The translations under genes and the position numbers were made by a program. Below, piece after piece: positions 17,087 to 33,218 of a stretch of 64,000 nucleotides of DNA. The stretch is from Paramoeba atlantica (taxonomy: Eukaryota; Protista; Discosea), in NCBI GenBank assembly GCA_977017575.1, contig CDRNVI010000021.1, positions 496,001 to 560,000 on the forward strand, given 5' to 3'. Under the pieces are notes generated by a model. It made no database searches, was not told where the DNA came from, and saw nothing but the letters and a program-made list of their open reading frames with translations. Position 1 is the stretch's first letter. Every line of letters starts with the position of its first letter.

Positions 17087-18586
17087 ATGAGACTTGCAGT
17101 ATGGTGGCTGATTGCTTCTTATCTTCTTCAAATGCTAGTTGTAGCGCATACTTTGGGACTTTCAGAATACTTTTCTTGCCTTACTAGCCCAAAAGAAATT
17201 TCAGTCGAAACTGCTGTTATTGAATCATCTGAACATGTGCTTTCTGAACATGGAATCCGGTTTTCTTCACGCGTCACGCAACTTTGGAACAATCTGCTCT
17301 ACCCACGTAAACGAAATGAAAAGAGCGTTCTACACTATCTGAATCCAATACGTACAAATACTACTTATCTTGAAACTTCGTCAGAAAATGTGATACACAA
17401 CTTAACGAAAGATGCTCGGCTTATTTTTCCTGAGGTATATAGATCATTCGCCATAAATACTAGAAGTAATCCGATCTCTTCGATTCATCTATGCGTCAAT
17501 TTTTTCGCAACATCTCCAGAAAATCAAGGAGAGAAAATTGCTGTAGGAGCACTGGAGGCGTACGTGGCACGTGGACACATTGCCAAAAATGTTGCCTTTA
17601 TTACACCATATGTAGAAAGTGTGTTGGCGCAGACAAAGAACTTTCTATCTTTAATATTGCCAGTCACGTGGGACTACGAAACTCAATTTATTTCCGCACA
17701 GTGTTTCTCAGCTTTGGTAAATACAAAAGCATTGTTCCACCCTCCTCTGTCCTCGTATGCATATACGTGGAAGGAATTGTTTTCTAAGAACATAACGAAT
17801 TGCATACGTGCACTAAATCAACAAAGTTCTTGCGCCAATCTGAAATCGCATCCACTATGCCAGGACAACGCTTCCTCATATTCGCCTAGTATGAGAAAAA
17901 TATACTTAAACTTTGTAGTGTTGCCATTGAGGTACATGCCATTAGCTTGGCATCCTTCCATGAATACATCAAATGAAAGATTTACTCCTTGTGCTGCATT
18001 CGGAGTCGAGGGTCTTATGTGTTACCTTCCGGAAACTTCAATTTTGCGCGACTTAAATCGTACTTCCCTTCAAATGCCTGCGAATTCTTCTCTTCCTTCG
18101 TGTAATATTTATTCAACGATTTTACAAGCGTATCTTTGTGCTATGTTGGGTTTATCCTGTTCAAAGAAGAAACGGGAATTGTCGTCACAAAGCGACGAAA
18201 ATATATTAACACACCTTGTAGAATCTATGCATCAAGCAACTGCTACTAACCAAGAAAAGATACGGGACATGGTATTGTTTCAGGGATCAATCACCCCTCC
18301 TAATGATTTTATATCGTCTTGCATTGCACTTCGGGACTGCTTAAGCAAGAATTCATCAACTGCATCAGATGTTAGACATTGCTATCTAAAAAGTGAAGCT
18401 CTACTGAAGCACGAATTCCTATATACGAGTATGAAGGAAGATATTCCGCAAGCCATAGTTGCACTGTCCCCATTGCTCATTCCAATACTGCTCTGTATTC
18501 TTTCTGGATGGATTCGACCAACTTTTAAGAATCATCGAAGTCATGTGCTCAACAGTGGATCGAAAACAACAAGTTCAGCAAGTTAA
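17087..18586 (+). CDS. Membrane protein with N-terminal signal/TM and C-terminal TM; possible GPI-transamidase PIG-S/TTA1-like subunit
   Basis: Hydrophobic N-terminus; the C-terminal KSEALLKHEFLY...AIVALSPLLIPILL loosely resembles the PIG-S terminus. The family call is tentative. Confidence 0.4.
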   Translation: MRLAVWWLIASYLLQMLVVAHTLGLSEYFSCLTSPKEISVETAVIESSEHVLSEHGIRFSSRVTQLWNNLLYPRKRNEKSVLHYLNPIRTNTTYLETSSENVIHNLTKDARLIFPEVYRSFAINTRSNPISSIHLCVNFFATSPENQGEKIAVGALEAYVARGHIAKNVAFITPYVESVLAQTKNFLSLILPVTWDYETQFISAQCFSALVNTKALFHPPLSSYAYTWKELFSKNITNCIRALNQQSSCANLKSHPLCQDNASSYSPSMRKIYLNFVVLPLRYMPLAWHPSMNTSNERFTPCAAFGVEGLMCYLPETSILRDLNRTSLQMPANSSLPSCNIYSTILQAYLCAMLGLSCSKKKRELSSQSDENILTHLVESMHQATATNQEKIRDMVLFQGSITPPNDFISSCIALRDCLSKNSSTASDVRHCYLKSEALLKHEFLYTSMKEDIPQAIVALSPLLIPILLCILSGWIRPTFKNHRSHVLNSGSKTTSSAS

Positions 18587-18975
18587 ACCATGGGCAGCAA
18601 TACTCTCCGCAAACTATGCGTAGGAGGCTTACTCCGCCAATACAGTGGTCGTCACCAATCTGAGAGTATGAAAATGAGAATGACTCACACAATAATGGAA
18701 AATTATCATGTCAACGTTCAACTAAAACAAGGCCCTGAAAATGAGAATGGATCAAAAGTGATGTTGTGCAATCTGGGCTTCGAAAAGTAAACATCCGCAC
18801 GAAAATTCAGCTACTAGTGGTGGAGGTGATGACCCTGCCGGAGGGGTGACGATCTTTTTGGCGGGTCTCTGGATCGAAATCTCAACGTCCGGGAATTATG
18901 GTTTTTAAAGGAATTAGTAAAGTCGCAGGTAAAATCAGTATCTAAAAATACATGTATAGGTACTAAAAGAACAAA

Positions 18976-19037
18976 TAAAGTTCCTTATGATAAAGTACCT
19001 AAACGTATAATAAAGTACCTAAACGTATGATAAAGTA
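18976..19037. repeat. 20-bp tandem repeat (TAAAGTACCTAAACGTATRA, about 2.5 copies)
   Basis: Units at 18991, 19011 and 19031 (partial), with a degenerate copy from 18976. Confidence 0.75.
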
Positions 19038-19509
19038 ATAAACTAGTCCTACTTTCTTTCCGAAACTTAGCAGCAGAACTTTAGTTAATTTGTAATTTTG
19101 AAATCCTTTCTACTTCGTCTTCCCCCTCTTCAACTTCAGATTCTGAGTCACTCACCCAGATGAAGTCTTCAACGTCGTCCTTTGACTCCAGCAAGAAATT
19201 AGGCGCTGTAGGAAATTGAATTCCTTCGTCGGGGCTGCGTGCGGAGCTATACTTCTTCTTTCCTATCCAGTTTCCCGAATTTTCATAATACTCATCGCTC
19301 TCCCAGCATGACTTTACATACCTTTGCGGGTCCCCTGGGTCCGGACCCACCCGGGTCCATGAACCCGGGTCCTCGGACCCACGGACCCACCATAGAGACA
19401 TACCATTTCTCATATCCAGTATGGAGCGTCGGTGAAGTAATTGAAGGATCGCTGCAGTATGGGGATAGCACATGTGCTACTGCATGCGCATTGTGCAACG
19501 ATTCACATA

Positions 19510-21071
19510 CAGGGGGATGCACGAAAATATGGGGGGGTCAAAATTCTTATAACTCGGCCAATTTTGGAAAATAATAGCGCATTCGAGAGCTCTCCCAGAG
19601 TTACGTGTCATGTGATATTACGTTTTATGTAGTTTCCAGGTATATGCATTCTCCTGAATACCGTAAATAGGGCAACTGCAAGTTTTTTTTTTGGTAAAAA
19701 AGTTAGTATCCACAATTTCCACCTTTTTCTCCAACACAATTTTCACACGCGTTGGAACACTCTTTAAAGTTCTCAAAAATACATCGTATTGCTCCCCCTT
19801 TAATTTTTCGACCCCACAAGCGATCGCTCGCCTCAAATCTTCACGATTCGTTGGACAAAGCGCGTTTTTATGCTCGTCCATTATTCCTCAAATGTTTTCT
19901 ATTGGGTTTAAATCTGTGGATTTGGGTGGCCAACACAACATCTTCACTCCTTCATCATTAAAGGCACGACGAGTGCTATTGTGAATTGGACAATTATCCA
20001 TAGCAACGACTGCCCCCCGATGTCTTCGTAAAAAAGATAAGAAACCGTTACGTTGTAGCATAGTTTTTTTGAAAAGGTGCCCATTCACTGAAATTTTATT
20101 ACCCTGTTGATCTTTGTTGGGGAATTCATGAAAAAAGAAACCTAGCTTAATGCTGACCCCCATCCACACCATAATACCATCACCCCCCAACCACTTTTCC
20201 CGCTCACCGGCGTGCTCCTTTGGGGGGTCTGAACGACGGCAAAGGTAGGTAATTTTGCGGCTGCCCCCGCAAGTAAATTTTTTCTCGTCTGTCCAGACGA
20301 TAGCCTCAAGCTGAGCAGGGGTCCATGTTGCCAACTCCTGGCATAGCTCTACTCGTTTCCTTTTCTGCTCCTTTGTGAGTGTAGGTTCCGGGGGACTGTG
20401 CGGGATATGATACCCTCCTTCTTGAGGGAACGTATCAGAGCGCGACGGGAGCATATGAAACCCTCTCCTACAAGAAGGTTCAGAAGGTGACCCCAAGAAG
20501 CGATACCGTAGGTTTCATTCCTTGTTGCTTGATCAATAAGATTGAGTGCTCGCTTCAACAGAGGGTCAGATATTACAGGAGATTGGCGAGTTTTATAGGG
20601 AGACCTATCGACCTCACCAGTCTCTTCGTAACGCTGCACCCAACGCTTGACAGTGTCCTCGTGACACCTAAACGTCTTGGCGACAGCTGAAAAAGAATTT
20701 GTTTCCTCAAATTTTTTAACCAAAAGTATCCTATGAGATGCTTTAAGTTGCCCACGAGGCGAATAGCAAAATCTACTCCGTTTCTGCACCTTTTTATTAT
20801 TCGAATATGACCTTTTCTGGGGCATGGCAGTGTAATAGGATCAAAAAAGTCGATAAATTCACAAAAAAAAGGTATTTTATTCAAAAAACTGCAGAATTCT
20901 GCACTTTGAAAAATCATAATTTTTTTAATTTTTTTAAAAAATTAAAAAATGCGGGAAACACATTATCACATGACACGTAACTCTGCGAGAGCTCTCGAAT
21001 GCGCTATTATTTTCCAAAATTGGCCGAGTTATAAGAATTTTGACCCCCCCATATTTTCGTGCACCCCCCTG
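19510..21071 (-). mobile_element. Full-length Tc1/mariner-superfamily transposon (1562 bp) nested inside the hAT-like element
   Basis: 108-bp TIRs (19510-19617 and 20964-21071) with 2 mismatches; TA duplication at 19508-19509 and 21072-21073; internal transposase on the minus strand. Confidence 0.95.
19618..20825 (-). pseudogene. Tc1-like DDE transposase, inactivated by one frameshift (near 20390) and one TGA (19888-19890)
   Basis: HTH-like AVAKTFRCHEDTVKRWVQRYEETG; PTLTKEQKRKRVELC; IVWTDEKKF; IMVWMGVS; AMDNCPIH; WPPKSTDLNPIENI*GIMD; LKSVPTRVKIVLEKK. Confidence 0.9.
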
Positions 21072-21394
21072 TATGTTACACTCATTAGGGCTCATAGTGC
21101 GAAAAAAGGCGTCACACGTGCACTCTTGGACTGGCCCGTGGTTTAAGGGGAAACGGACACCTTGGTGCCCCGGGCTACTAGTTAGAGATGCTAGAGATAA
21201 TTTGTTCCTGCACATGAAGAGATGTGTATCATTCTCGTTGCCTTCTTATTGCGTTGATGGACATGAAGTTCGATTAAAGTACAATTTTTAAAAAATTGTC
21301 TTTGTAGAATGATGCGATATTTGGGCTATCTTTTGGCTATACTCCTTGTACATCGTACTATATTTTCTTAGTATATAATACGTGCATGATAAAA

Positions 21395-21735
21395 TTGGGT
21401 ATGGCTCGACACCGAGAAAAACCACAGAAATTCTCAGATAGGACACAAAATGAAACGGAGCTGTGGACGCTGAATGTATTTCAACAAAAGAAACCTTATT
21501 ACAAATCCTCTTACTATGAAGTTTGGGTATGGCTCGACACCGAGAAAAACCACAGAAAATCTCGGATAGGACACAAAAAGAAACGGAGCTGTGGACGCTG
21601 CATAACAATAAAAGAAACTTTATAACAAACCCTCTTACTATGAAGCTTGAGTATGGCTCGACACCGAGAGAAAGCACCGAAATTTTCAAAAAAAAACAGA
21701 GCTGTGGACGCTGAATATGTTCTACCCTCTTACTA
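21395..21735. repeat. Three diverged ~124-128-bp tandem repeats inside the hAT-like element
   Basis: Core ATGGCTCGACACCGAG at 21401, 21529 and 21653; GAGCTGTGGACGCTG and CCTCTTACTATG recur in each unit. Confidence 0.9.
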
Positions 21736-21750
21736 TGGAGTATTGAAGTA

Positions 21751-23135
21751 TCAAATGTCATCTAAGGAATCCTCCGTCATGATACAATCGCTTTCCTGTG
21801 CACTACTCTCTGAATCACTAGAGCTACATTCTTCAAAAGATAGATATCCCAATTTCTCACAATTGGCTCTTATGAATATTTGATTTGAGATTACTGCGGG
21901 AGAAATCGAAGCCTGGCGAGAGTTGAACATATAGGCAAGAATGGATAAGATAGAATCGCACTTCGTCACAACAACTGGGATCCATAGGTAATGTCGTGCT
22001 GCGACAAACACCTTCGGGAAATACACTCTTCCGATGGTACACCACCATTCGTATTCATTTTTGATCCCACTCATAATCCTCACATTCCATATATTCCTTC
22101 CATTCCTGCTCCGATATCGAAAACAATGGCTCTTCACTAAGTCTGTCATCAAACAAATTATTGGCTTGTGCAACTGAAATGGGTTCTTGCTCGCATGGAC
22201 GCCCAAACTGAGACCCGACACAACCGATTGACACCAAGCTCTATATTTTCCAGATCATTGTCACCGACAAGAGACATACGATCTTAGATCGTCTTTAGGA
22301 ATCCCTCACAATGAACACAGGCAACGTAATTTACCGTAGAACCGTCCACCATTAAAAATTTGAGCTTGAGAAGTCGTTCTTCCCCCAAGTTGCTAGATAA
22401 ACAGTCCATAAGCTCTCTGGCCATGGCATAGCCATCATACGCCTTGTGTTTTGTGGAATAAATAGGAGGGAGAACATACTCGTGACGTTCCACGTAAAGC
22501 ACTACGTATCATTATGTGCTCAGCTTTTAAACGGTCAATACCCGTGTCTACAGCCAATCCAAAATAGGAGTACGTGTCAATGTCGGAGCACAAAATTTTC
22601 CATAATTCGTCCGCCAATCTAGCGGTAAGTGCATGCATTTCATGGAGAGCTTTGGGCCGCGCCTGCAAAAGCATTTCTGATGAGACTTTCTCATCAGACT
22701 TTCATACATATTTAAAAACCATATGTATCTACTTCCAGGAAGGTTTGTCATCGCGTATAAGCATGGTAAAACGTTTGTATTAAAATGCGTAACTTTATCC
22801 ATGTACTGTGCATGGTCGCAGAGATCTGAAGTTCGCTCAGAAGAAATTTTATCCTGACAAACACGACGATGCTCCAGATAATGATTTTTGTACTTGCCGT
22901 GCGAGGACCATTTACAGTGCTTGCACTCGTAGTGCTGCTCAAAGCCGTTGGCATTTAACGGTATGCCTTCGTGAGAGTACATACAATCTGATGCACATCG
23001 CATGAGAGAGAAGTCTTGTGGGAAGGCACCTTCCGTCATGAATTTTCGCCCGGACAATCGTCTCCGACCTGGATCCGGAGATCGGTCTTGACTTGAGTCC
23101 ATGTTCGTCGGAGGAGGCGAAGAGTGTTCCATCAA
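21751..23135 (-). pseudogene. hAT-like transposase pseudogene
   Basis: In order: BED-finger-like YECKHCKWSSHGKYKNHYLEHRRVC; YFGLAVDTG (first Asp); FLMVDGSTVN (second Asp); hATC-like WWCTIGRVYFPKVFVAARHYLWIP...ILSILAYMFNSRQASIS...IFIRAN. The pieces are in different frames. Confidence 0.7.
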
Positions 23136-24205
23136 ATAAGATTTGGCTAAGAAATAGGTTTCGAAGCTTCAAGTAATAAAAAAATTAAAGAAAACTGTAC
23201 ATACAGTACATGTATGATTGCAAAACCAACATCACTGATGAATTAGCATATATCCCAAAAGTTTTTGATAAGATTTTTTAAATAATCAGCATGAAGATTT
23301 GAGTATACATTGATTTGAGTGTATATTGATGTATTGAATGAAGATTTGAGTGTATATTACGGCTGTTACGTGGGTCCGGACCCAGGTCCGTGGGTCCCTG
23401 GGTCCGGGGACCCGGGTTCGGACCCACGGACCCATAAAAGGTATGGATTTTATTGCGCTTCCGGAAACCATATTCCAAGCCGCATTGGCTACTTGCACCA
23501 TACAGTGCAGTATTCCAGGAAGGAATGTATTGCAGAGGCGAATCGCTTTTTTCAGCTTCCAGTTGTATCAGATCCGCGTAGTTAATTTTAAACATTTTAA
23601 TAATGCTGAGATCTGTGGGTTGTCAAATGTGGGTCATACCGGGAGGGCCAAAACGAACCTCGCCTCCAGTATAGACGTCGCCGCACATATTTTCCAAAAT
23701 AGATGGAAGGTTGAGATGTCCCAAAAATCGGTTTAAAATCCAGAATACGTTTCCCGGCATTATGCTGGCCATGTGGCGAAGAGCCTGACAGCAAACGCGA
23801 GCATCCGCCCAAGCATTCTCCTGTAAGGGTTTCTCGATTTAGGATTTGGTGTCCCTTTAAGCACAAACTGGAGAGGAAGCTTTTCTCCGGCCATAGATGT
23901 GCCGACGAGTATCGTGACACGCGCTTTGGATCCTAAGTTACATAATGCGAAGGGGGAAGCGGAATTCTTTTTCGTATGTCAATGTTCAATTACGGATTCT
24001 GAGAATAGTGACGACCACTTTGGAATAAATATGATCATATTTTACATGTATTGTAGCACCAATCATCATTTAGCGCCTTTTAGAATGATGCATAATACAC
24101 TTACAGTGTATTTACCTTGAAGTTAAATCTTTATGTAACTTTGAGCGCACCAAAATACATAAAAATATCATATTCCGTCATTTTTTTCCTTTGAAATAAC
24201 GAATA

Positions 24206-25180
24206 ATGGTCATACCAGCTAAAGGAAAGATTCTAGCTCTTTCTGTGGGCGTCATCCTCACCTACTTCAAATACTTATATACAAAAATTCAAAAATATAA
24301 GAGCGAACGTGATATGCTGTGCAAAAAATATCCTCCGTCTTCCTCCATGAGTACTCCCACTCCGAAAAGCCAAGTTGCCATTATAGACGACAATATTTCT
24401 ATCCGTCTGCCTATACTACCTGCGCTTGTGGCTTTTCTCCTTCCTCTCTTTATTGGGTTAATGTGCGTAAAAACCTTTTCTCACGTTCAAATTTCTCATG
24501 TAATTAACATATTCCGAAATGTTCAGCACCCTACTACATTTCAAGGAGCAGGAGAAATCACTACCCACCTGCGCGCACTATCCGCAGCATATCCAACTAG
24601 CGTATTGAGTGTCTTAGTTCTCATTTATGCTTTTTTGCAAACTCTGTGTATTCCAGGCACTCTTGTTATCAATGTTGTGTGCGGTGCTCTCTACGGTCCT
24701 TGGATTGCATTTCCCATATGTGTATTAGCTGGTACTTTGGGTGCATGCAGCGGTTATGGGCTATCTCGGATCGTGGGATACCCTTTAATTCACTCTCTGG
24801 ATCAGTTCTTCACGAATGGTTCGTATCTTCCGTTGTTTAGACAGAAATTAAATGAACACCGTCGCCACCAATTCATTTACTTAATGTTTTTAAGAATATC
24901 ACCTTTGCTTCCAAATTGGTTTATCAACTTGGCTTCTCCCATTGTAGGTGTTCCACTTCGTCCTTATATTTTGTCCACTTTCTTGGGAATCATACCACAA
25001 AGTCTTCTTGTTGTCCGAGTCGGGTCTTTATTGGCCGACTTTGCAATTGGTCAAGCCGAAAATGGAGTCTATGGGACAAAGCCTCTCGTAGGTCTACATG
25101 AATGGGTAACTCTGGTTGTGCTGGGAATTTTTATTCTAGCGTTCATTATTTTACGACGTAACGCAGAGCGCAGAGCATAA
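24206..25180 (+). CDS. TMEM41: TMEM41/VMP1-family (VTT / SNARE-associated domain) membrane protein
   Basis: FLQTLCIPGTLVINVVCGALYG and YLMFLRISPLLPNWFINLASPIVGVP are TMEM41-type motifs. Confidence 0.85.
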   Translation: MVIPAKGKILALSVGVILTYFKYLYTKIQKYKSERDMLCKKYPPSSSMSTPTPKSQVAIIDDNISIRLPILPALVAFLLPLFIGLMCVKTFSHVQISHVINIFRNVQHPTTFQGAGEITTHLRALSAAYPTSVLSVLVLIYAFLQTLCIPGTLVINVVCGALYGPWIAFPICVLAGTLGACSGYGLSRIVGYPLIHSLDQFFTNGSYLPLFRQKLNEHRRHQFIYLMFLRISPLLPNWFINLASPIVGVPLRPYILSTFLGIIPQSLLVVRVGSLLADFAIGQAENGVYGTKPLVGLHEWVTLVVLGIFILAFIILRRNAERRA

Positions 25181-25321
25181 TTTTCTTTACGATTTTCTCC
25201 TTTTTCGGTGCTTGAATTTTTCTTTGTTTTACTTTCTCTTTCATATTATTTTTTATCTGCGATGCATACATTTACACTGATTATCATATTTTTTATCTAG
25301 ATAATAAGAGATGTCAACCCA

Positions 25322-27334
25322 ATGATTTGCCGACTGTGCAACAATGATGCAGTGAAGGTTCCCATTTGTCCGAAAGAGCATGTCTTACATTCGCTACTTC
25401 CACGAAGTGTGATAAAAGATTCTTTTGTCAACACAAAAAATCCGTCTCTAAGAAATGCACAAGCATCTACATGTAATCCGCACGGAGTAGAACAGAATAA
25501 TATTGCTGTCCGTCAAGCAGAGTCTAAAATACAATCTCTTGTACACCGTTCACATATAATTTCCTATGCTCTTATTCAAGTCAGAGATGAATCTGAAAGG
25601 CAGAGTCTTCAAAATCGAGTAAGAGCATTGGATTCGAAGGTCAAAGAGGACATTACAAAGTGGAATCAGTTTGGTGTGGAGGATATAATATCAAAGAAGG
25701 AGAAAACACCCTTGACTAGAGACAGTGTGCGCGCTACGCAACGTCCAACAGCTACATTGGCTAAAATACAAGCGAGTACACACTTGCATGATAAATCTAG
25801 TCATACGTCCTGCGACAGCCGAATTCAAAATAAAGTTACATTAGATAATGACGATGGAACTGAAAAAAATATAGAGCTAAAAGAATATAGATCGAAACCA
25901 GGCCACGTTGAATCTAGTTTTGGCGATAGACAGAAGAAAGGCGCTTCTTTTCCTTCCAATTCCAGTAAAAAGCCTGAAATCGCTAAAAAGGGAAAATCCT
26001 TTTCTCCTATTAGGCATCGAGGCAAGTCAATATCTCCTTCGCCAGAGAATCGTCATCATAAACATACTACGAATGCGAAATCTGATGACCTAGACGGTTA
26101 TAGAAGTTTGTCCGTTTCATCAGAAGACAGCTATGAATATTATGAGAAGAAAGTGTATCGAAAAGCATTAAGAAAAGCTAATCTCGGTGTTCTAGATGTC
26201 TTGGGCGCGGAACGAGACAGCCTTCTCGTAAAAGAACGTATGCTTCAAAGAGCTAAGCGCTTTGGAACGTCAAATCTGGAGGAAAATGTAAACAAGCATG
26301 TTGATGAACAAAAGAGACCAGATCAAATGGTATACAAAATTGCGACAGAATCATGTCCTGTAATAGGAAAAAGTACCGCCCTGGAAAAGACTTACACTCG
26401 TTTACAAGGACGCAGCGATCCTAATTATGTTCGTTCAGAAACTGTTCTGCGTAAATCCTTCGAATACGTACAGGAACGCGCGAAGCTAAAACCTACACTG
26501 GAAGAATCTTTAAAATATCTAGGTGAACAGTACAAATCTATTCGACAAGATCTTGTGATACAACATGTTGAAAATATATTTACGATTGAGGTTCTGGAAG
26601 CGCATGCCCGGCTGACTCTTGAGCTTGGAGATCTTCTAGAATTCAACCAATTGCAAGGTCGCATACAAGCTCTACACCGTTTACCATGTTGCTCTGCGCG
26701 TGAAACACGATACGAGTTTGGCGCACTTCATCTCATATATTGTGCTTTAATGGGTAATGCCGGCGGTATTGCCGCAGAATTCACTGCCTTAACCTTGAAA
26801 GATATGGGTCGTACGGAGATACAACATGCAGAGTGCGTTGTACGCGCCGCGGCGACAGAAAACGTGTTTAAGCTTATTCAGTTGTATTACAGTGCCCCGA
26901 GTAGGTACACTCAACTTTTACTGCGACGCTTGTTTCAGGAAAAGCGCACCAATTGGTTATTGCAGTTTTTACAATCAAGAGCTCCGAAATCAAAAATTAA
27001 ATTGTCCCAAATAAGTAGAGCGTTGGGGTTTGATGTAGAAAATGATGACACATTAATCCAAGAAGAGTCAGGGATGAAAAAAGCTTCTCTCTCAACTCGG
27101 TGTATAACGAGCAAACATGTATCTTCCAGCGAAAGCAGTGCGGTAGCTGACTTTCTAGCGAAGTTAAGCATTAGCACAAATACTGATTCTGAGCCTCTTC
27201 ACTTTTCTGATGCAAACTTCCAAGACCGTACTCTAGAGTGCTCTATAGCGGTGCGCCAGATCACGGAGCATATTAAATTTATTCATACTAGAGAGGACGC
27301 TCAACACGCGCAACGCTCTGTTTCTACTCTGTAA
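25322..27334 (+). CDS. SAC3/GANP-domain protein, THP3/LENG8-like
   Basis: IGKSTALEKTYTRL, EQYKSIRQDLVIQH and EAHARLTLELGDLLEFNQLQ follow the LENG8/Thp3 pattern. Confidence 0.82.
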   Translation: MICRLCNNDAVKVPICPKEHVLHSLLPRSVIKDSFVNTKNPSLRNAQASTCNPHGVEQNNIAVRQAESKIQSLVHRSHIISYALIQVRDESERQSLQNRVRALDSKVKEDITKWNQFGVEDIISKKEKTPLTRDSVRATQRPTATLAKIQASTHLHDKSSHTSCDSRIQNKVTLDNDDGTEKNIELKEYRSKPGHVESSFGDRQKKGASFPSNSSKKPEIAKKGKSFSPIRHRGKSISPSPENRHHKHTTNAKSDDLDGYRSLSVSSEDSYEYYEKKVYRKALRKANLGVLDVLGAERDSLLVKERMLQRAKRFGTSNLEENVNKHVDEQKRPDQMVYKIATESCPVIGKSTALEKTYTRLQGRSDPNYVRSETVLRKSFEYVQERAKLKPTLEESLKYLGEQYKSIRQDLVIQHVENIFTIEVLEAHARLTLELGDLLEFNQLQGRIQALHRLPCCSARETRYEFGALHLIYCALMGNAGGIAAEFTALTLKDMGRTEIQHAECVVRAAATENVFKLIQLYYSAPSRYTQLLLRRLFQEKRTNWLLQFLQSRAPKSKIKLSQISRALGFDVENDDTLIQEESGMKKASLSTRCITSKHVSSSESSAVADFLAKLSISTNTDSEPLHFSDANFQDRTLECSIAVRQITEHIKFIHTREDAQHAQRSVSTL

Positions 27335-27545
27335 CATTTTCGTAGATGAACATGAAACAAATGAATCATCAACGAGAAATGATGAATACAATGTAAATAA
27401 TCTAAGAAACAACTATTATTTAGGCACAAAAGGCTTTACTTTTAGCCATTGTTTAAATTTCAAGGATGCATCATGCTAGCACAAGGGCACTTTGTTTACA
27501 TGTGTTACATTTTTTTCAGAACAACACCCAGATTAAAAAGGAGTG

Positions 27546-27582
27546 AAAAATGAATGGTTTTAATTTAAAACCATTCATTTTT
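27546..27582. repeat. Perfect 17-bp inverted repeat with a 3-nt loop
   Basis: AAAAATGAATGGTTTTA-ATT-TAAAACCATTCATTTTT. Confidence 0.85.
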
Positions 27583-27708
27583 AATATAGTATAATTTAAA
27601 CTTTTAAAGCAAAACCTGTACTCCATTATTCGACATATAAATTACACAATCAACACATCTAAAGTCTTATTTTGTTTTTTATCAAATTGATTATTTTAGT
27701 AATACTTG

Positions 27709-28266
27709 AAAATGGGAAGAGAAAACGCTAAGAGAGCTTATCGTAATTCGAGGCGTCGGATCCGTCTTTATTTGATTATTACGGCGGTAATAAATATTTT
27801 TTGGCTTTTGGTATCAGGAACGCTGCGCGTAAACCTTTCCGGACTTCGCAATATTTCGGTATGGTTTCCATTGTTTTTGTGGTTGCTGCAGCAATTGACG
27901 ATGATATGGTTTTTATACAAAGCTGTATCTCCGAGCTTTGACGAGTATAACAATCTTCTAGACAGTCAGGACATTACAAACGCTCAAGTACTTGGTCTGT
28001 ACAGCTATGCGCAGGACTTTCTTTGGTTATGTTGGGTGATACAAGCAGGAAGCTTATACTCGTCCCGATTTTATATTATTTATGGGTTTATGGCGATCTA
28101 CGTAGTGTATCGAGTTCTCACTCTTTTAGGTACGTTTATTTGGGCCTGGCTGGGCACTGGATCTCATGAAACATCCGAGTCAACGTCCAACGCATCACGC
28201 AATGCTCCTCGTTCGTCGCGCACTATTGCACAGCGCCGAGCAGAAGCAGGTCGAAGAAGATTTTAG
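27709..28266 (+). CDS. TMEM208: TMEM208/SND2 (DUF788) ER membrane protein
   Basis: Three TM segments plus the D.....GL.SY.QD...L....Q...L.S..F pattern; basic C-terminus. Confidence 0.7.
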   Translation, partial: KMGRENAKRAYRNSRRRIRLYLIITAVINIFWLLVSGTLRVNLSGLRNISVWFPLFLWLLQQLTMIWFLYKAVSPSFDEYNNLLDSQDITNAQVLGLYSYAQDFLWLCWVIQAGSLYSSRFYIIYGFMAIYVVYRVLTLLGTFIWAWLGTGSHETSESTSNASRNAPRSSRTIAQRRAEAGRRRF

Positions 28267-28442
28267 AGGCTTTTTATTTTTTAGAAAACAGATTAGAGTG
28301 AGAGTGACCATAAATATATGGTCGTATGTTTCGAAACCAAGCATAGAAAGTAAGAAGCCATCATGTTCTTCGCGCTCAACTACAGCGCAGATTGATATCA
28401 ACGTTAGCAATCGTAGAAAACAATTACTCGCTTTCTAGCATA

Positions 28443-28804
28443 CAGGGCGGAAAAAAAGTTATGTCAACAAAAGTCGAGGCAACAAAAGTTGTGTCAACAA
28501 AGTCGTGTTAATGCGAAACGTGGTGAGGAACAAAAGACTTTTGTTTTTTATCATACTTTTAAAGTATGCTAAAAAATAGAATAGTTCTCTATTTTTGGTA
28601 AAATGGGTGCATATTCGCTCTTTTCCCTTGAAACGAAGGTGACTTGGCCATCGAGAGTGCGGTTTCAGGGGTATTACATGACGCTCTGGCACTGCCATCT
28701 CACTTATGGGGGGGAAATAGTTCTGGCCACATAAGTTGTGTGAACTAAAGTCGTGTTAATCCCAGAAATTAACACGACTTTTGTTGACACAACATAATCC
28801 CCCC
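28443..28804. mobile_element. MITE-like / foldback relic with repeated GTTGTGTCAACAAAAGTCGTGTTAAT motifs
   Basis: Starts TA|CAGGGCGG and ends CCCCCC|TA. Motif copies at 28458 (partial), 28488 and 28735, inverted at 28768-28793. 28735-28793 forms a hairpin with 24/26 paired arms. The outermost ends do not pair well. Confidence 0.55.
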
Positions 28805-28893
28805 TATCTTCTAGCACATTGGATTGCATCGAAATTACATAAGATTTCGAAAACGAATCAATAATTTTTTTTACATTGGTAGATCCCTAGCTG

Positions 28894-30060
28894 ATGAATG
28901 CAGAATACCGACGTTTGATGAGTGAAAAATACTCTAAGCTCACAAAAGAAGAGAAGCCGCACATTCAAATATGCGATCTGTGTCAACAACCTTTGTACAA
29001 GGAGAAAGTTTGTTCGGAGTCTGGTTTATTTCACACAAAAACGAACCAGAACACAAGAGAGATTTGTGGAATCGCTGTCGACAAAGATCAACGTTGCATA
29101 ACAGGGGCGCAGCTTACTGAGTTTATGAAAATACTTCGCATTAAGTGGGAACCTGCGCGCATACAGAAGGTAAAAATTGATCAAGATGCCATATCCATGT
29201 TTCAAAGTTTTGCAACTTTGCGGTCTTGGAGGCTTCATCGCATCGGAGTGCTCTATGGAAAAATATGCGAAAATGACACAGCCATAGAAATACACGGCAT
29301 ATATGAACCTGAACAAGAGAATACAGAAATTTCTACAAAATTATCTGCAGATTCTCGAACATGTCAGGTTGACACAATTGCCTCGCTCTTTGGTCTTCAA
29401 CGATTGGGCATTATTATCGCGCATGGCTTTCGAGAAAAATCAGAGGTCGTAATGACTGCTGAGGAGACACTTTTAGGATTGAAAGAAAGCTCCCGGTTCG
29501 GAGACTTATGTATCGTAGTGACAGTTTCTCCCAAAAAAGATTCGGCAGAGTGTGAAGTAGAAGTATGGCAAGCTTCACAGCAAGGCGTTCATTTGTATCG
29601 TTTGGGTTACTTCCACTGTTCGAATCAATCGACGGGTTTGATACATAGCAGTAAACCTTTAGAGGTAGCGGAGGCTCAAAAATCTGGTTCGGGAAGGCCT
29701 TCTATGGTTTCTAAAGCTCCTAGTCATGAAATTGATTGTCGTTGGTTAATTTCCCCAGTGGCTGTAGAACCTTTTCATTCGTCTCTATTTCGAAACCGAT
29801 TCGTACGCATATCACGCCCTGGGGAAGAGAGTCCCACTATACTTCACCTCGCACGGTGTTTCGCTGATCAGAAATATCGTGACAAACCGTTTCTTTACAA
29901 GGTAGCTGATTTTCATATTCTCATATTTCTTGCGGAATTCATTCTAGATCTGAAAAACGATATACCTGTGTTAGTAAATGCTATTCTAACGAAAGACTCT
30001 GTTGCAGCCTCCGGCATCGAATATCTAATCAAAGCATATTTAGAGAACGTGTCGCTTTAA
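28894..30060 (+). CDS. NPL4: NPL4-family (MPN-like) Cdc48/p97 cofactor
   Basis: HRIGVLYG, IHGIYEPEQE, GLQRLGIIIAH and KVADFHILIFL match the NPL4 core. Confidence 0.82.
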   Translation: MNAEYRRLMSEKYSKLTKEEKPHIQICDLCQQPLYKEKVCSESGLFHTKTNQNTREICGIAVDKDQRCITGAQLTEFMKILRIKWEPARIQKVKIDQDAISMFQSFATLRSWRLHRIGVLYGKICENDTAIEIHGIYEPEQENTEISTKLSADSRTCQVDTIASLFGLQRLGIIIAHGFREKSEVVMTAEETLLGLKESSRFGDLCIVVTVSPKKDSAECEVEVWQASQQGVHLYRLGYFHCSNQSTGLIHSSKPLEVAEAQKSGSGRPSMVSKAPSHEIDCRWLISPVAVEPFHSSLFRNRFVRISRPGEESPTILHLARCFADQKYRDKPFLYKVADFHILIFLAEFILDLKNDIPVLVNAILTKDSVAASGIEYLIKAYLENVSL

Positions 30061-30380
30061 ATCATATAAACTTTCAAAAACATTCCGAATCGTCTTTCTC
30101 CTGTATTGTCATACCGGATCAGAGAGGTAGCCTTCTCGCTTAATGAAAACCACGGCTTCCATTTCTATGCCACTTTCATTCAAATAACATCTCTTCTATC
30201 AGCATGTCTCGGATAGAACGCAACACTCCACCTCCATTATATTCCATCCTTCACCCTATAATTATTCATAAATAATATATAGGGGAAAGGATTTATAATT
30301 AGTTATTAGAGGGGGGAAACAATTGTTTTCACCCCATACTTTTCCTTTTCCCTTACCACTCTTTCTCCTCCCCTTCCTCC

Positions 30381-31103
30381 ATGCGTTCCCTCCTCCAACG
30401 TTCCCCCAAATTCCCCACCCGCCTCCTCTACCCCCTTACACCCCTCACCCCCCTCACGCGCACTGCCCTCCCCTCCCCCCTCACCCGACCCTACTGCACC
30501 CCCTCCTCCCCCCCTCCCCCCTCCCCCTCCCCCCCCACCGACCTCTGCAAAGTCCTCGACAAGGAGCTCACGGACGAGCAGGCCATCGACCGCAGCCCCC
30601 CACCTCCCCTCCCCGATGGCTGGACCCTCCAGCTCCACCCCGGCAAGAGCTTCTTCACCATGTCCCACCCCGCGGCCAGCCCCGCGGAGGCCACGCTCGA
30701 GGTCTTCTGCGCCCTCCCGAAGGGGAACCCGGACGCGGGGAACACGGAGGAGCCCGTGGAGCAGTACCCGTTTGTGCTGCGCGCGCTGCGGCACCAGCGC
30801 ACCGTGGAGTTCTCCATGCTCTCCGTGGAGAACGAGCTCGTGGTGGACAACATTGTGGTCTACCCCAGCGCCCGGGGGATTACGGATTTCTTATCCGCCC
30901 AGACGTGCCGGGAACTGGAGAGTCACTACCAGGGCCCCACGTTGGCGCACCTGGATGAGGCCGTGATTACCGTGTTGCATAGTTACTTGGAGGGGAAAGG
31001 GGTGACGGATAAGTTTGCGGTGTTTATTAAGGAGCAGTGTGAGTATATTGAGCAAGGGGAGTATGAGCGGTGGTTGCGGGATTTTAAAACGTTTGCGGAG
31101 TGA
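30381..31103 (+). CDS. Mitochondrial acidic matrix protein, MAM33/p32/p22 family
   Basis: C-terminal YQGPTLAHLDEAV...YLEGKGVTDKFAVFIKEQCEYIEQGEYERWLRDFKTF matches the MAM33 signature Y.GP.F..LD..L...l..yL..rG......f.....E..EY..WL. Confidence 0.85.
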   Translation: MRSLLQRSPKFPTRLLYPLTPLTPLTRTALPSPLTRPYCTPSSPPPPSPSPPTDLCKVLDKELTDEQAIDRSPPPPLPDGWTLQLHPGKSFFTMSHPAASPAEATLEVFCALPKGNPDAGNTEEPVEQYPFVLRALRHQRTVEFSMLSVENELVVDNIVVYPSARGITDFLSAQTCRELESHYQGPTLAHLDEAVITVLHSYLEGKGVTDKFAVFIKEQCEYIEQGEYERWLRDFKTFAE

Positions 31104-31433
31104 GGGGGGAATAGAGGGGTGGGGGGAAAGTAGAGTTTTATGTGAAGCGTTAAGGTGTATTCTTGTGGAGGTAACACATACAGGTGTAGGAGGTGGTCTG
31201 TTTGGAGTTTGATTCTTGTATAAGAAAAATCTTAAGGAATGGGCTTACGCAACTTTTCTTTGGAATAAGTAGGGAGACATTTCGTACTAGTCTACTATAG
31301 ATTGTGACTTTTGTTCTATTTGATTAAAAGATTCAAGCTTTTAGGCGCATTTATTTAAATTGTTGCAGTTTGTTTGTATGGTAAAAGAATTGTGGTAGTG
31401 AACGGTATTCAAACTAATCCCCTTAACTTAAGA

Positions 31434-33218
31434 ATGAGTTTTTTTCGCGATCTACTGGACCCCAGTTGCGGAGGGAACACATTTGCAGATGCAGCAGGGG
31501 CTATGTTTCAAGGCCCTATGGTTCCGCTTGAGACTTGGGGTGAGACACCGGAGGAATCTCATGTGAATGAAGCGCCCCCTCTATACGCTGACTTTAATGC
31601 TTTTCCCTCGAACTACAACGATGAGACGCCTCCAATAGAATACGCAGAAACGTTAATCACCCCTTTTACGGGAAATGATGAATATTTCGATGTTTCTTTT
31701 GATTCCGTATGGAATCAGGAGCGTAAATCAGGTGAACCTCCATCGCGCATGAGGGATGAATCATATGCAGAGTATGTTCCTGGTTCAGATGCTCATATTG
31801 GATTTGATGACCCAGGAGACAGCTCTGCGTGGCTTGAAAGGTTTGTAGGAGAGGCTTCGGGGCCTATCGTAAATGAACCTGTGCAAGAATTTTCTATCGA
31901 AGGCATGGGTGAACAAAATATTAATTCAGAACCCACGATACTGGATGAAGAACTTGACGAGGCTCGTTCGGAGTCAGTTAATCAAGACAACTCTTTCTCT
32001 GAAACAACCGAACATGACGTAATAAATGAGAGTGCGGTACCAGATGATTTGGAAAATACGTCATGGGCAAACCAATTTCAAGACGACGAAGGATTCTCGA
32101 CTTTTGAGGAGCAAGCTGTGGAAGAATCCTGGGCTAAAGACTTCCTTCAAAATTCGGATAACGAAGACCTTTCCTGGGAACAAGAATATGAGAACTTTTC
32201 CAAGAATGAGTTAGGACTGGATAAAACTTCCGAAGAGTACCCATTTCATCCTGACAATCCGTATCGCTTTCATGACTTTCCTTTTGAGGAAGGGAACGAT
32301 CTGTTGCACGCCGGGGCGGTAGCCTCCGCTGCCCTAGCCTTTGAGGCAGCCTGCCAAAAAGATAGTCAACACGTAGAGGCATGGCAGCAACTGGGCCATG
32401 CCCTACAAGAGAGCGAGAAAGACCCACTCGCTGTAATCGCACTACGTAAGGCTGTAGAATTAGATCCATTGTGTCTTCCCAATTATCTTTCTCTTAGCGC
32501 TTCCTTGACGAATGAGGGACATGCCGGTGCAGCACTTGGGATTTTACGTCAATGGCTGCGGTATCATCCAGAATATGCGTCGTATACTGTTGATGCAATA
32601 ACCTCCGAGGGGGACGAAATGGTATCTGAGTACCTCGAGGTAAACGCTGACGAGCACCAGGCCCTAAGTAGCTCTCTTGAGCAAGCAGCCGTCTATAGCA
32701 ACACGGACCCTGACCTCCACCTGGCGCTTGGTATTGTTCACAATCTTTCCCATGAATACGATCTCGCCGCGGCGGATTTTCAAAGCGCCTTAGCATTACG
32801 CTCCGACGATGCCATTTTGTGGAATCAACTGGGCGCCACACTAGCTAATGGGAACCGATCGCAAGAAGCGCTTCAGGCATACGACCGTGCATTAGACATT
32901 AAACCGGGTAATGTTCGGGTGCACTACAACCGCGGCATCTCGCTCTCCAACCTTGGGGAGTACGCGGAGGCTGTACGTACATTTCTTAGGGCAGTACATT
33001 TACAAAATGAAGCGACCAGTGAAACCTCTTTAGAAGATAAAGCAGATGGGCCCATGCTGCACCAGTACACACTGTTTCGCAGAGCAGAGTGTACACGCGA
33101 GATATGGAACATGATGCGTCTCACTTTACACCAGATGGATCGCAGTGACTTGATTGAGCTGACCACTAGAAATGATATTACAGCTCTTGCGAATGAATTT
33201 GGTGTAGAATTGAACTGA
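31434..33218 (+). CDS. PEX5: Peroxisomal/glycosomal PTS1 receptor PEX5
   Basis: N-terminal conserved Cys (DPSCGGN), four WxxxF/Y motifs (WLERF, WANQF, WAKDF, WEQEY), and a C-terminal TPR array (WNQLGATLANGNRSQEALQAYDRALDIKPG). ATG at 31434 is the likely start. Confidence 0.95.
   Translation: MSFFRDLLDPSCGGNTFADAAGAMFQGPMVPLETWGETPEESHVNEAPPLYADFNAFPSNYNDETPPIEYAETLITPFTGNDEYFDVSFDSVWNQERKSGEPPSRMRDESYAEYVPGSDAHIGFDDPGDSSAWLERFVGEASGPIVNEPVQEFSIEGMGEQNINSEPTILDEELDEARSESVNQDNSFSETTEHDVINESAVPDDLENTSWANQFQDDEGFSTFEEQAVEESWAKDFLQNSDNEDLSWEQEYENFSKNELGLDKTSEEYPFHPDNPYRFHDFPFEEGNDLLHAGAVASAALAFEAACQKDSQHVEAWQQLGHALQESEKDPLAVIALRKAVELDPLCLPNYLSLSASLTNEGHAGAALGILRQWLRYHPEYASYTVDAITSEGDEMVSEYLEVNADEHQALSSSLEQAAVYSNTDPDLHLALGIVHNLSHEYDLAAADFQSALALRSDDAILWNQLGATLANGNRSQEALQAYDRALDIKPGNVRVHYNRGISLSNLGEYAEAVRTFLRAVHLQNEATSETSLEDKADGPMLHQYTLFRRAECTREIWNMMRLTLHQMDRSDLIELTTRNDITALANEFGVELN

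Follow-up and report, generated by a model that had tools for sequence, protein, structure and literature searches.

DNA transposons in kinetoplastids

Kinetoplastids are the textbook example of genomes which contain retroelements and are free of cut-and-paste transposons. Relics of Merlin elements in Bodo saltans and Perkinsela are the first DNA transposons reported in the group (Lopes et al. 2021; PMC8101967). The genome paper of B. saltans lists ingi, SLACS/CZAR, VIPER and TATE elements only (PMC4728078), and a 2025 survey of 57 trypanosomatids found no class II elements, trypanosomatids being regarded as devoid of them (PMC12278014). MULE- and Helitron-like open reading frames (ORFs) are known in Diplonema (PMC10161547). 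The locus described here is a stack of three DNA transposons, in which a pogo-like element holds a hAT-like element, which holds in turn a Tc1-like element. It resides in a 64-kb stretch (the window; G000:C21:496001-560000) of assembly GCA_977017575.1 (Paramoeba atlantica), which measures 45.7 Mb in 248 contigs. All three layers are real, as each features its own inverted ends, its own target duplication, and its own relatives elsewhere in the genome.

The preliminary description of this DNA stated that canonical DDE transposons are considered to be missing from the well-studied trypanosomatid genomes. The searchable papers agree, since they report Merlin-type elements only for kinetoplastids as a whole, and none for trypanosomatids (PMC8101967, PMC12278014, PMC4728078). 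Nothing beyond Merlin was found in these papers on Tc1, hAT or mariner elements in kinetoplastids or Bodo, Repbase and subscription journals being outside the scope of the search. The nest and the Merlin relics of B. saltans and Perkinsela have in common that DDE DNA-transposon sequences mark non-trypanosomatid kinetoplastids (PMC8101967). In contrast to the nest, Merlin belongs to another superfamily (DDE_Tnp_IS1595), for which few divergent copies were reported and, in Perkinsela, neither inverted ends nor target duplications; the three superfamilies found here have clear ends, duplications and many copies.

Structure of the nest

The nest occupies the spacer between two plus-strand ORFs (17087-18586 and 24206-25180). 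The transposase frames of all three layers lie on the minus strand, antisense to the plus-strand gene array, and all are pseudogenes; all three copies are defective at present. The nest is very probably the inert result of three successive cut-and-paste insertions in one spacer of a kinetoplastid-type polycistronic unit. The pogo-like element, the ends of which read TA|CAGTGGTCGTCAC, entered a TA located 56 nt past the stop codon of the upstream gene. The hAT-like element entered the ...AIKS CWE... codons towards the end of the DDE_1 domain of pogo, with duplication of 7-8 bp (GACTTTA / GATTTTA). The Tc1-like element, which has very long inverted ends, entered a TA located 193 bp inside the hAT-like element. 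The three-layer arrangement and the superfamilies assigned in the preliminary description (Tc1, hAT, pogo/DDE_1) hold, on the basis of ends, duplications, and matches to domains and relatives.

The outer pogo-like element

The features of the outer element are listed below; the strand is given, here and in the following lists, where it applies.

18643-24020, minus strand: the outer element itself, pogo-like (DDE_1), which measures 5,378 bp when the inserts are counted and 1,242 bp when they are not; the copy is a pseudogene with an internal deletion
18641-18642: TA target-site duplication, left copy; alignments to paralogues begin at 18640/18641
18643-18677: terminal inverted repeat, 3' end in the transposase sense, CAGTGGTCGTCACCAATCTGAGAG...
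19084-19316, minus strand: pogo-like C-terminal coding relic, which matches amino acids (aa) 371-404 of the intact relative and continues in an acidic tail and a stop
23453-23984, minus strand: pogo-like DDE_1 core relic, aa 182-373 of the relative, with 2 frameshifts and 2 stops, the second catalytic D changed to N and the third D kept
23977-24020: terminal inverted repeat, 5' end in the transposase sense, terminal base mutated (T for G)
24021-24022: degenerate right TA duplication, which reads TG

The outer bounds first proposed (19081-23945) are too short, and have been corrected to 18643-24020 by the ends of paralogues. In searches of the genome against itself, at least 24 other copies start exactly at 18640/18641 and share the ends of the outer element, and nearly all listed paralogue ends read TA|CAGTGGTCGTCAC (TA|CAGTGG type). 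The 43-nt stretch 23977-24019 is common to at least 24 copies, and at least 7 other contigs hold copies that match it at 100%. The window element retains TA on its left flank, and its right terminus is decayed, reading ...CCACTT TG where ...CCACTG TA is expected.

An intact relative is encoded on contigs C85, C3 and C2 by an open frame of 462 codons (459 aa from the ATG), which scores 63 bits on the Pfam DDE_1 model. Its catalytic triad is made by D167, D277 and D317, and the 39-residue spacing from the second to the third D is within the published pogo range. Three collinear tblastn segments of the window cover aa 182-404 of this protein (joint E 4e-56). Residues 182-234 match positions 23984-23826 at 66% identity, and residues 249-356 match positions 23826 to ~23500 at 48% identity. 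Residues 354-404 align, as one segment in a single frame, across the junction restored by removal of 19317-23452 (CMVQVANAAWNMVSGSAIKSCWESDEYYENSGNWIGKKKY vs VMMRLARNAWNSISRDKIRSCWASGGYIPNQGTWVGQKKY). The in-frame join NAAWNMVSGSAIKS|CWE of the preliminary description is therefore correct, once the hAT layer and one of the 7-nt duplicates are taken away.

The empty site is provided by six short paralogues of 0.6-1.1 kb (L035-L038, L041, L042), which read ...AATAAAGTCATGCTGGGAG... uninterrupted; in the window the counterpart is split by the hAT-like element into ...GCAATAAAATC and TAAAGTCATGCTGGGAG... In the same six paralogues the breakpoint of the internal deletion is found ~10-17 nt upstream, on the sense strand, of the hAT site 19316/23446 (chance ~1-2%).

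The window relic lacks aa 1-181, and hence the first catalytic D, as all the sequence between the 5' inverted repeat and about codon 181 is deleted. The second D is replaced by N (WILNRF vs WLLDRF), the third is retained (QPTDL). Region 23446-23976 has no other match in the genome at the DNA level, and the copies with 100% identical 43-nt ends on C72 and C56 hold N-terminal fragments only. All surviving copies of the outer family seem to be deleted forms of 0.6-1.2 kb, and the window copy is 75-86% identical to its paralogues. A 20-bp tandem repeat (18986-19037, 2.6 copies, 93% matches) is located in the 3' untranslated part of the element.

The family resembles pogo/Tigger elements (the pogo branch of the IS630-Tc1-mariner group) in the DDE_1 domain, the D-D-D triad of the intact relative, the QP-D-LG-IK-FK motif, the TA duplication, the CAGTG ends, and the acidic C-terminal tail. 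It differs from them because the closest public relatives are only ~30% identical, and because Pfam at E <= 0.01 detects DDE_1 alone, and no CENP-B/Tc5-type helix-turn-helix (HTH), in the 459-aa relative; the window copy has lost its N-terminus.

The middle hAT-like element

19317-23445, minus strand: hAT-like element, 4,129 bp, or 2,565 bp once the Tc1 insert and its TA are subtracted; its transposase is a relic from which ~317 internal codons are deleted
19310-19316: target-site duplication, left copy, GACTTTA
23446-23452: target-site duplication, right copy, GATTTTA, one mismatch
19317-19390: left inverted repeat and subterminal GGGTCC/GGACCC repeats, 7 hexamers
23369-23445: right inverted repeat and subterminal GGGTCC/GGACCC repeats, 7 hexamers
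21347-21720: a ~125-bp unit repeated three times in tandem, within the 3' untranslated portion of the element; the unit is also dispersed in the genome
21841-22937, minus strand: hAT transposase relic, in which a BED-like CxxC...H...H pattern, the first blocks of the catalytic core (GLAVDTGID, FLMVDG) and the C-terminal dimerisation region are kept, and ~aa 274-590 are absent

The ends of the element are CATACCTTT...AAAGGTATG (more fully CATACCTTTGCGGGTCC... and ...GGACCCATAAAAGGTATG). A repeat search identified an imperfect terminal inverted repeat of 32 nt (78%) and a subterminal pair of 30 nt (93%). More than half of the GGGTCC/GGACCC hexamers of the window (14 out of 27) are clustered in the two subterminal stretches. 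Matches to paralogues end at 19315-19317 and 23443-23445, and the same terminus was found by a pattern search on contigs C2, C10, C12, C20, C58 and C63. Ten end matches were found in the genome, and the paralogue ends gave no clean duplication; the one short copy featuring both ends (L075) is flanked by no clear duplication.

On Dimer_Tnp_hAT, scores of 28-31 bits are reached by long hAT ORFs of this genome (L057, L059). Their residues 7-160 and 470-591 match positions 22686-22230 and 22206-21841 of the window (E 1e-16 to 1e-25), the dimerisation piece at E 1e-22 to 1e-25. With P0018, a protein of 677 aa, the match reaches 22937 and takes in the CxxC...H...H segment. The alignment to full-length relatives, P0018 included, indicates that the window copy has lost ~aa 274-590; the relic carries stops and frameshifts as well. 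The element is 88-92% identical to its nearest paralogue.

Like Hermes, Ac and hobo, the hAT-like family features short imperfect inverted ends, subterminal hexamer arrays, a 7-8 bp target duplication, a C-terminal dimerisation domain in full-length relatives and, according to modelling, a putative Hermes-like fold. The top 12 PDB matches retrieved by Foldseek with the AlphaFold model of L057 all correspond to Hermes transposase (probability 0.97-1.00, E 2e-4 to 1e-2). Unlike these elements, the window copy is missing ~317 central codons and its duplication is not a clean 8 bp. A PDB sequence search with the hAT and the pogo relatives gave nothing useful, and no match to Hermes at the sequence level for hAT. 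Pfam finds no zf-BED in the window piece or in P0018, in both of which the CxxC...H...H pattern is visible by eye.

Parts of the ~125-bp tandem unit match C52, C8, C49, C55, C100, C23, C14 and C21:323954 at 77-94%, and the unit may be a separate dispersed repeat. The nearest hAT paralogue (C10:192761-199675; twin, C58:176057-182969) is itself a nest. It is interrupted by an insert of ~1.6 kb with a Tc1-like ORF (C10:197805-198923), and by an insert of ~4.1 kb with a DDE_1 match (C10:196135-196443); nests are therefore common in this genome.

The inner Tc1-like element

19510-21071, minus strand: Tc1-like element of 1,562 bp, with long inverted ends that correspond over 121 nt, inclusive of 5 flanking bases
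19508-19509: TA target-site duplication, left copy, as read in the sequence
21072-21073: TA target-site duplication, right copy, as read in the sequence
19717-20825, minus strand: Tc1-like transposase pseudogene, with HTH N-terminus and DDE_3 core, frameshifted once around 20350-20390 and interrupted by one TGA, which replaces W in NPIENI*G

The inverted arms (19505-19625 / 20956-21076) are 96% complementary over 121 nt in a repeat search, and the ends read TA|CAGGGGG...CCCCCTG|TA. The minus-strand ORFs score 30.3 bits on HTH_23 (cut-off 24.6) and 28.7 bits on HTH_28 (cut-off 25). Compared to siblings, the frame is shifted (RTVPRNLHSQRSRKGNE* vs RTVPRNPALTKEHKRKRVEL) and interrupted by a nonsense codon (NPIENI*G vs NPIENIWG). 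At least 141 DNA matches mark the genome, and include full-length copies at 90-96% identity, short deletion forms, and many forms reduced to the ends; nearly all the sibling ends checked are flanked by TA. The closest siblings are 94-96% identical to the window copy.

The element shares with Tc1 and Sleeping Beauty (IS630-Tc1-mariner) the TA duplication, the ends starting with CAG, a paired-type HTH N-terminus, and the DDE_3 core. The ORF of a near-intact sibling (369 aa) matches the catalytic domain of Sleeping Beauty SB100X at the sequence level (E 3.8e-7). The element differs from Tc1 and Sleeping Beauty in the length of the inverted ends, which measure about 116-121 nt, and in the spacing from the second D to the E, which is 32 in this sibling (D175, D272, E305) and not the canonical 34; the window copy is moreover a pseudogene, and its DDE_3 fragment scores 27.4 bits, just under the curated cut-off of 28.6. 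A sibling on contig C7 of the assembly (G000:C7, L004:1752-2858) features an unbroken 369-aa frame, the N-terminus of which seems to differ from that of L003 by a compensated double frameshift (RFRNGVDFAIRLVGNLKHLIGYFWLK vs VQKRSTFCYSPRGLLKACHRILLVKNFEE).

Order of the insertions

Containment implies that the pogo-like element was in place before the hAT-like element, and the hAT sequence before the Tc1-like element. The preliminary description held that the reconstruction fixes the order. Of this, the pogo-like element as the oldest and the Tc1-like element as the youngest stand as the most likely order; nesting alone does not establish whether Tc1 entered hAT before or after hAT entered pogo. 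Identities to relatives (Tc1 94-96%, hAT 88-92%, pogo 75-86%) agree with the order pogo, hAT, Tc1.

The hAT-like element might have held the Tc1-like insert already when it entered the pogo-like element, and the two would have moved as a non-autonomous composite. Nesting speaks to containment and not to the timing of the two inner events, and the hAT copy, being non-autonomous, would have needed a transposase in trans under either order. A second composite is nevertheless missing from the assembly, where sequences of the hAT/Tc1 junctions are restricted to C21 and to C32, its near-identical twin, and the Tc1 copy looks younger relative to its siblings than the hAT copy relative to its paralogue. 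We consider the composite unlikely, and retain the order in which Tc1 came last.

None of the three elements should be able to move alone. Only the Tc1 copy, the ends of which are 96% matched, could plausibly be mobilised in trans by near-intact siblings.

Integrity of the locus

Four runs of a single study (X1-X4) supplied the Logan short-read contigs that were placed on positions 18500-24400. These contigs bridge five of the six junctions of the nest (18643, 19317, 21072, 23445, 24020). Record 1 of X1 (5,161 nt) spans 4.1 kb of upstream flank and continues to 19413; records 4 and 7 cover 21048-21424 and 23240-24006, and record 8 extends from 23990 into 4 kb of downstream flank. Records of X2 and X3 are similar. 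The left junction of the Tc1-like element is absent from the listed Logan records, because contigs break in the high-copy inverted repeat. The same nest is found, inverted, on C32 (G000:C32:245000-258280 vs window 17200-31580), at 99.97-100% identity over at least 14 kb, with 3 mismatches in 10 kb. The contig pairs C2/C12, C19/C43 and C10/C58 behave like C21/C32, and the assembly seems to retain haplotigs or very recent duplications.

Several observations weaken the case for three genuine, correctly classified insertions. C32, whether a haplotig or a duplicate of very recent origin, is no independent locus, and the Logan runs, coming from one study, may be the source data of the assembly itself. 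One X4 contig joins 18753 to 23929, skipping 5,175 nt of the nest. No paralogue extends across the site where Tc1 inserted, and the Tc1 layer has therefore no empty-site control. The hAT duplication is 7 nt long with 1 mismatch, and an 8-nt reading needs the reassignment of one terminal base of the element. The C-terminal hAT piece of the window, taken alone, scores 15.4 bits on Dimer_Tnp_hAT, below the cut-off of 21.4, and the match to Hermes depends on a mediocre model of L057 (predicted local distance difference test, pLDDT, 60; template modelling score, TM, 0.17-0.33). Pfam gives no match to the separate stop-free pogo pieces of the window. The assignment of these pieces to pogo/DDE_1 is supported transitively, through the intact DDE_1 relative.

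A rare deletion allele, or a chimera generated via the GAAAATGAGAATG subterminal motif, could account for the X4 contig, the first 161 letters of which disagree with the window upstream of 18558. Since repeats invite assembly errors, and since this contig omits the interior, the nest might be a misassembly, or contaminant or host DNA (as from an amoeba) stitched between kinetoplastid genes. This is very improbable. Short-read contigs assembled independently from four runs lead from the unique genes on either side into the nest, and cross four more junctions, and the skipped form 18753-23929 is found at no third locus of the assembly. All three families are found on dozens of this genome's contigs, each with its own TA or inverted-end signature, and the flanking ORFs belong to a 22-ORF array, all on the plus strand, which includes an MRB1590-type gene. 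We take the nest to be a genuine part of the genome.

DNA transposons in the genome

The nest is one sample of a large and diversified population of DNA transposons. DDE_1 matches in the genome number at least 119, and many of them are part of frames that stay open for 460-770 aa; Dimer_Tnp_hAT matches number at least 35, in frames up to 898 aa. A second Tc1-like protein has at least 112 matches, many without stops, which fall into about eight identity tiers (~100-97, 63, 58, 56, 49, 47, 38%, down to 37%). Judging from these genome-wide counts, some families may still be active.

Relatives found elsewhere are distant. A word-based search with the pogo-like protein gave one match, a 97% copy from an ENA assembly, and an exhaustive HMMER search gave 756 relatives, the best full-length ones being 30-31% identical; one of these was checked, and is absent from the genome under study. 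Matches to the Tc1-like protein at 43-50% are ENA proteins, one of which is encoded at 100% in this genome, and the next matches are at <=27%. Beyond matches from the same species, hAT relatives are 29-33% identical. One derives from the EukProt transcriptome PhM_4, that is, Papus ankaliazontas grown on the bodonid Procryptobia sorokini (PMC7859406).

Horizontal acquisition, for example from an amoeba host of an endosymbiont, had been proposed as possible in the preliminary description. The families are present in many copies, on dozens of contigs, and include many subfamilies; decayed members are 75-86% alike, and the closest outside relatives are 26-33% identical. The families are old and have diversified in place, with no sign of recent transfer, and the amoeba-host or endosymbiont origin was rejected. 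A recent arrival of the three families by horizontal transfer would fit their patchy distribution, the trypanosomatid relatives being without DNA transposons (PMC12278014), and the proneness of DNA transposons to such transfer. It is improbable given the low identity of the best non-self relatives of each family, the spread of Tc1-like sequences from 100% to 37% within the genome, and the state of the outer family, which is made by decayed copies only. A hAT homologue in the transcriptome of a kinetoplastid culture (PhM_4) is likewise in keeping with long residence in the group.

The host gene array

17087-18586, plus strand: upstream host ORF, 499 aa, no Pfam family; the stop codon is 56 nt before the nest
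24206-25180, plus strand: downstream host ORF, 324 aa, VTT domain; the ATG is 185 nt past the nest

The plus strand carries all 22 ORFs of at least 280 aa in the window. Among these are gamma-tubulin-like, adaptin, SAC3/GANP and VTT-domain genes, as well as an ABC_ATPase gene that features an MRB1590_C domain; the whole forms a kinetoplastid-type polycistronic array. Being antisense to the transcription unit, the nest probably adds 5.4 kb to the spacer or to the 3' untranslated region of the upstream gene, and little else.

Significance

The three elements are ordinary members of known superfamilies, and the nest, which has no evident function, is ordinary dead debris; the interest resides in the host lineage. 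Ends, target duplications, empty site and restored frame make the locus a clean structural proof that three further superfamilies have transposed in a kinetoplastid-type genome. On balance we lean towards the view that a free-living-type kinetoplastid keeps a large, diverse and possibly active population of DNA transposons, undescribed in the searchable papers (about 8 Tc1-like subfamilies with open frames, several DDE_1/pogo lineages, and hAT lineages). Taken with the hAT transcript from a prokinetoplastid culture, such a population would place class II elements in the ancestor of Kinetoplastea, and would imply that they were purged toward the trypanosomatids. The finding bears on when and why trypanosomatids lost class II elements, on how polycistronic units tolerate antisense insertions of 5 kb, and on native transposases as possible genetic tools for bodonids.

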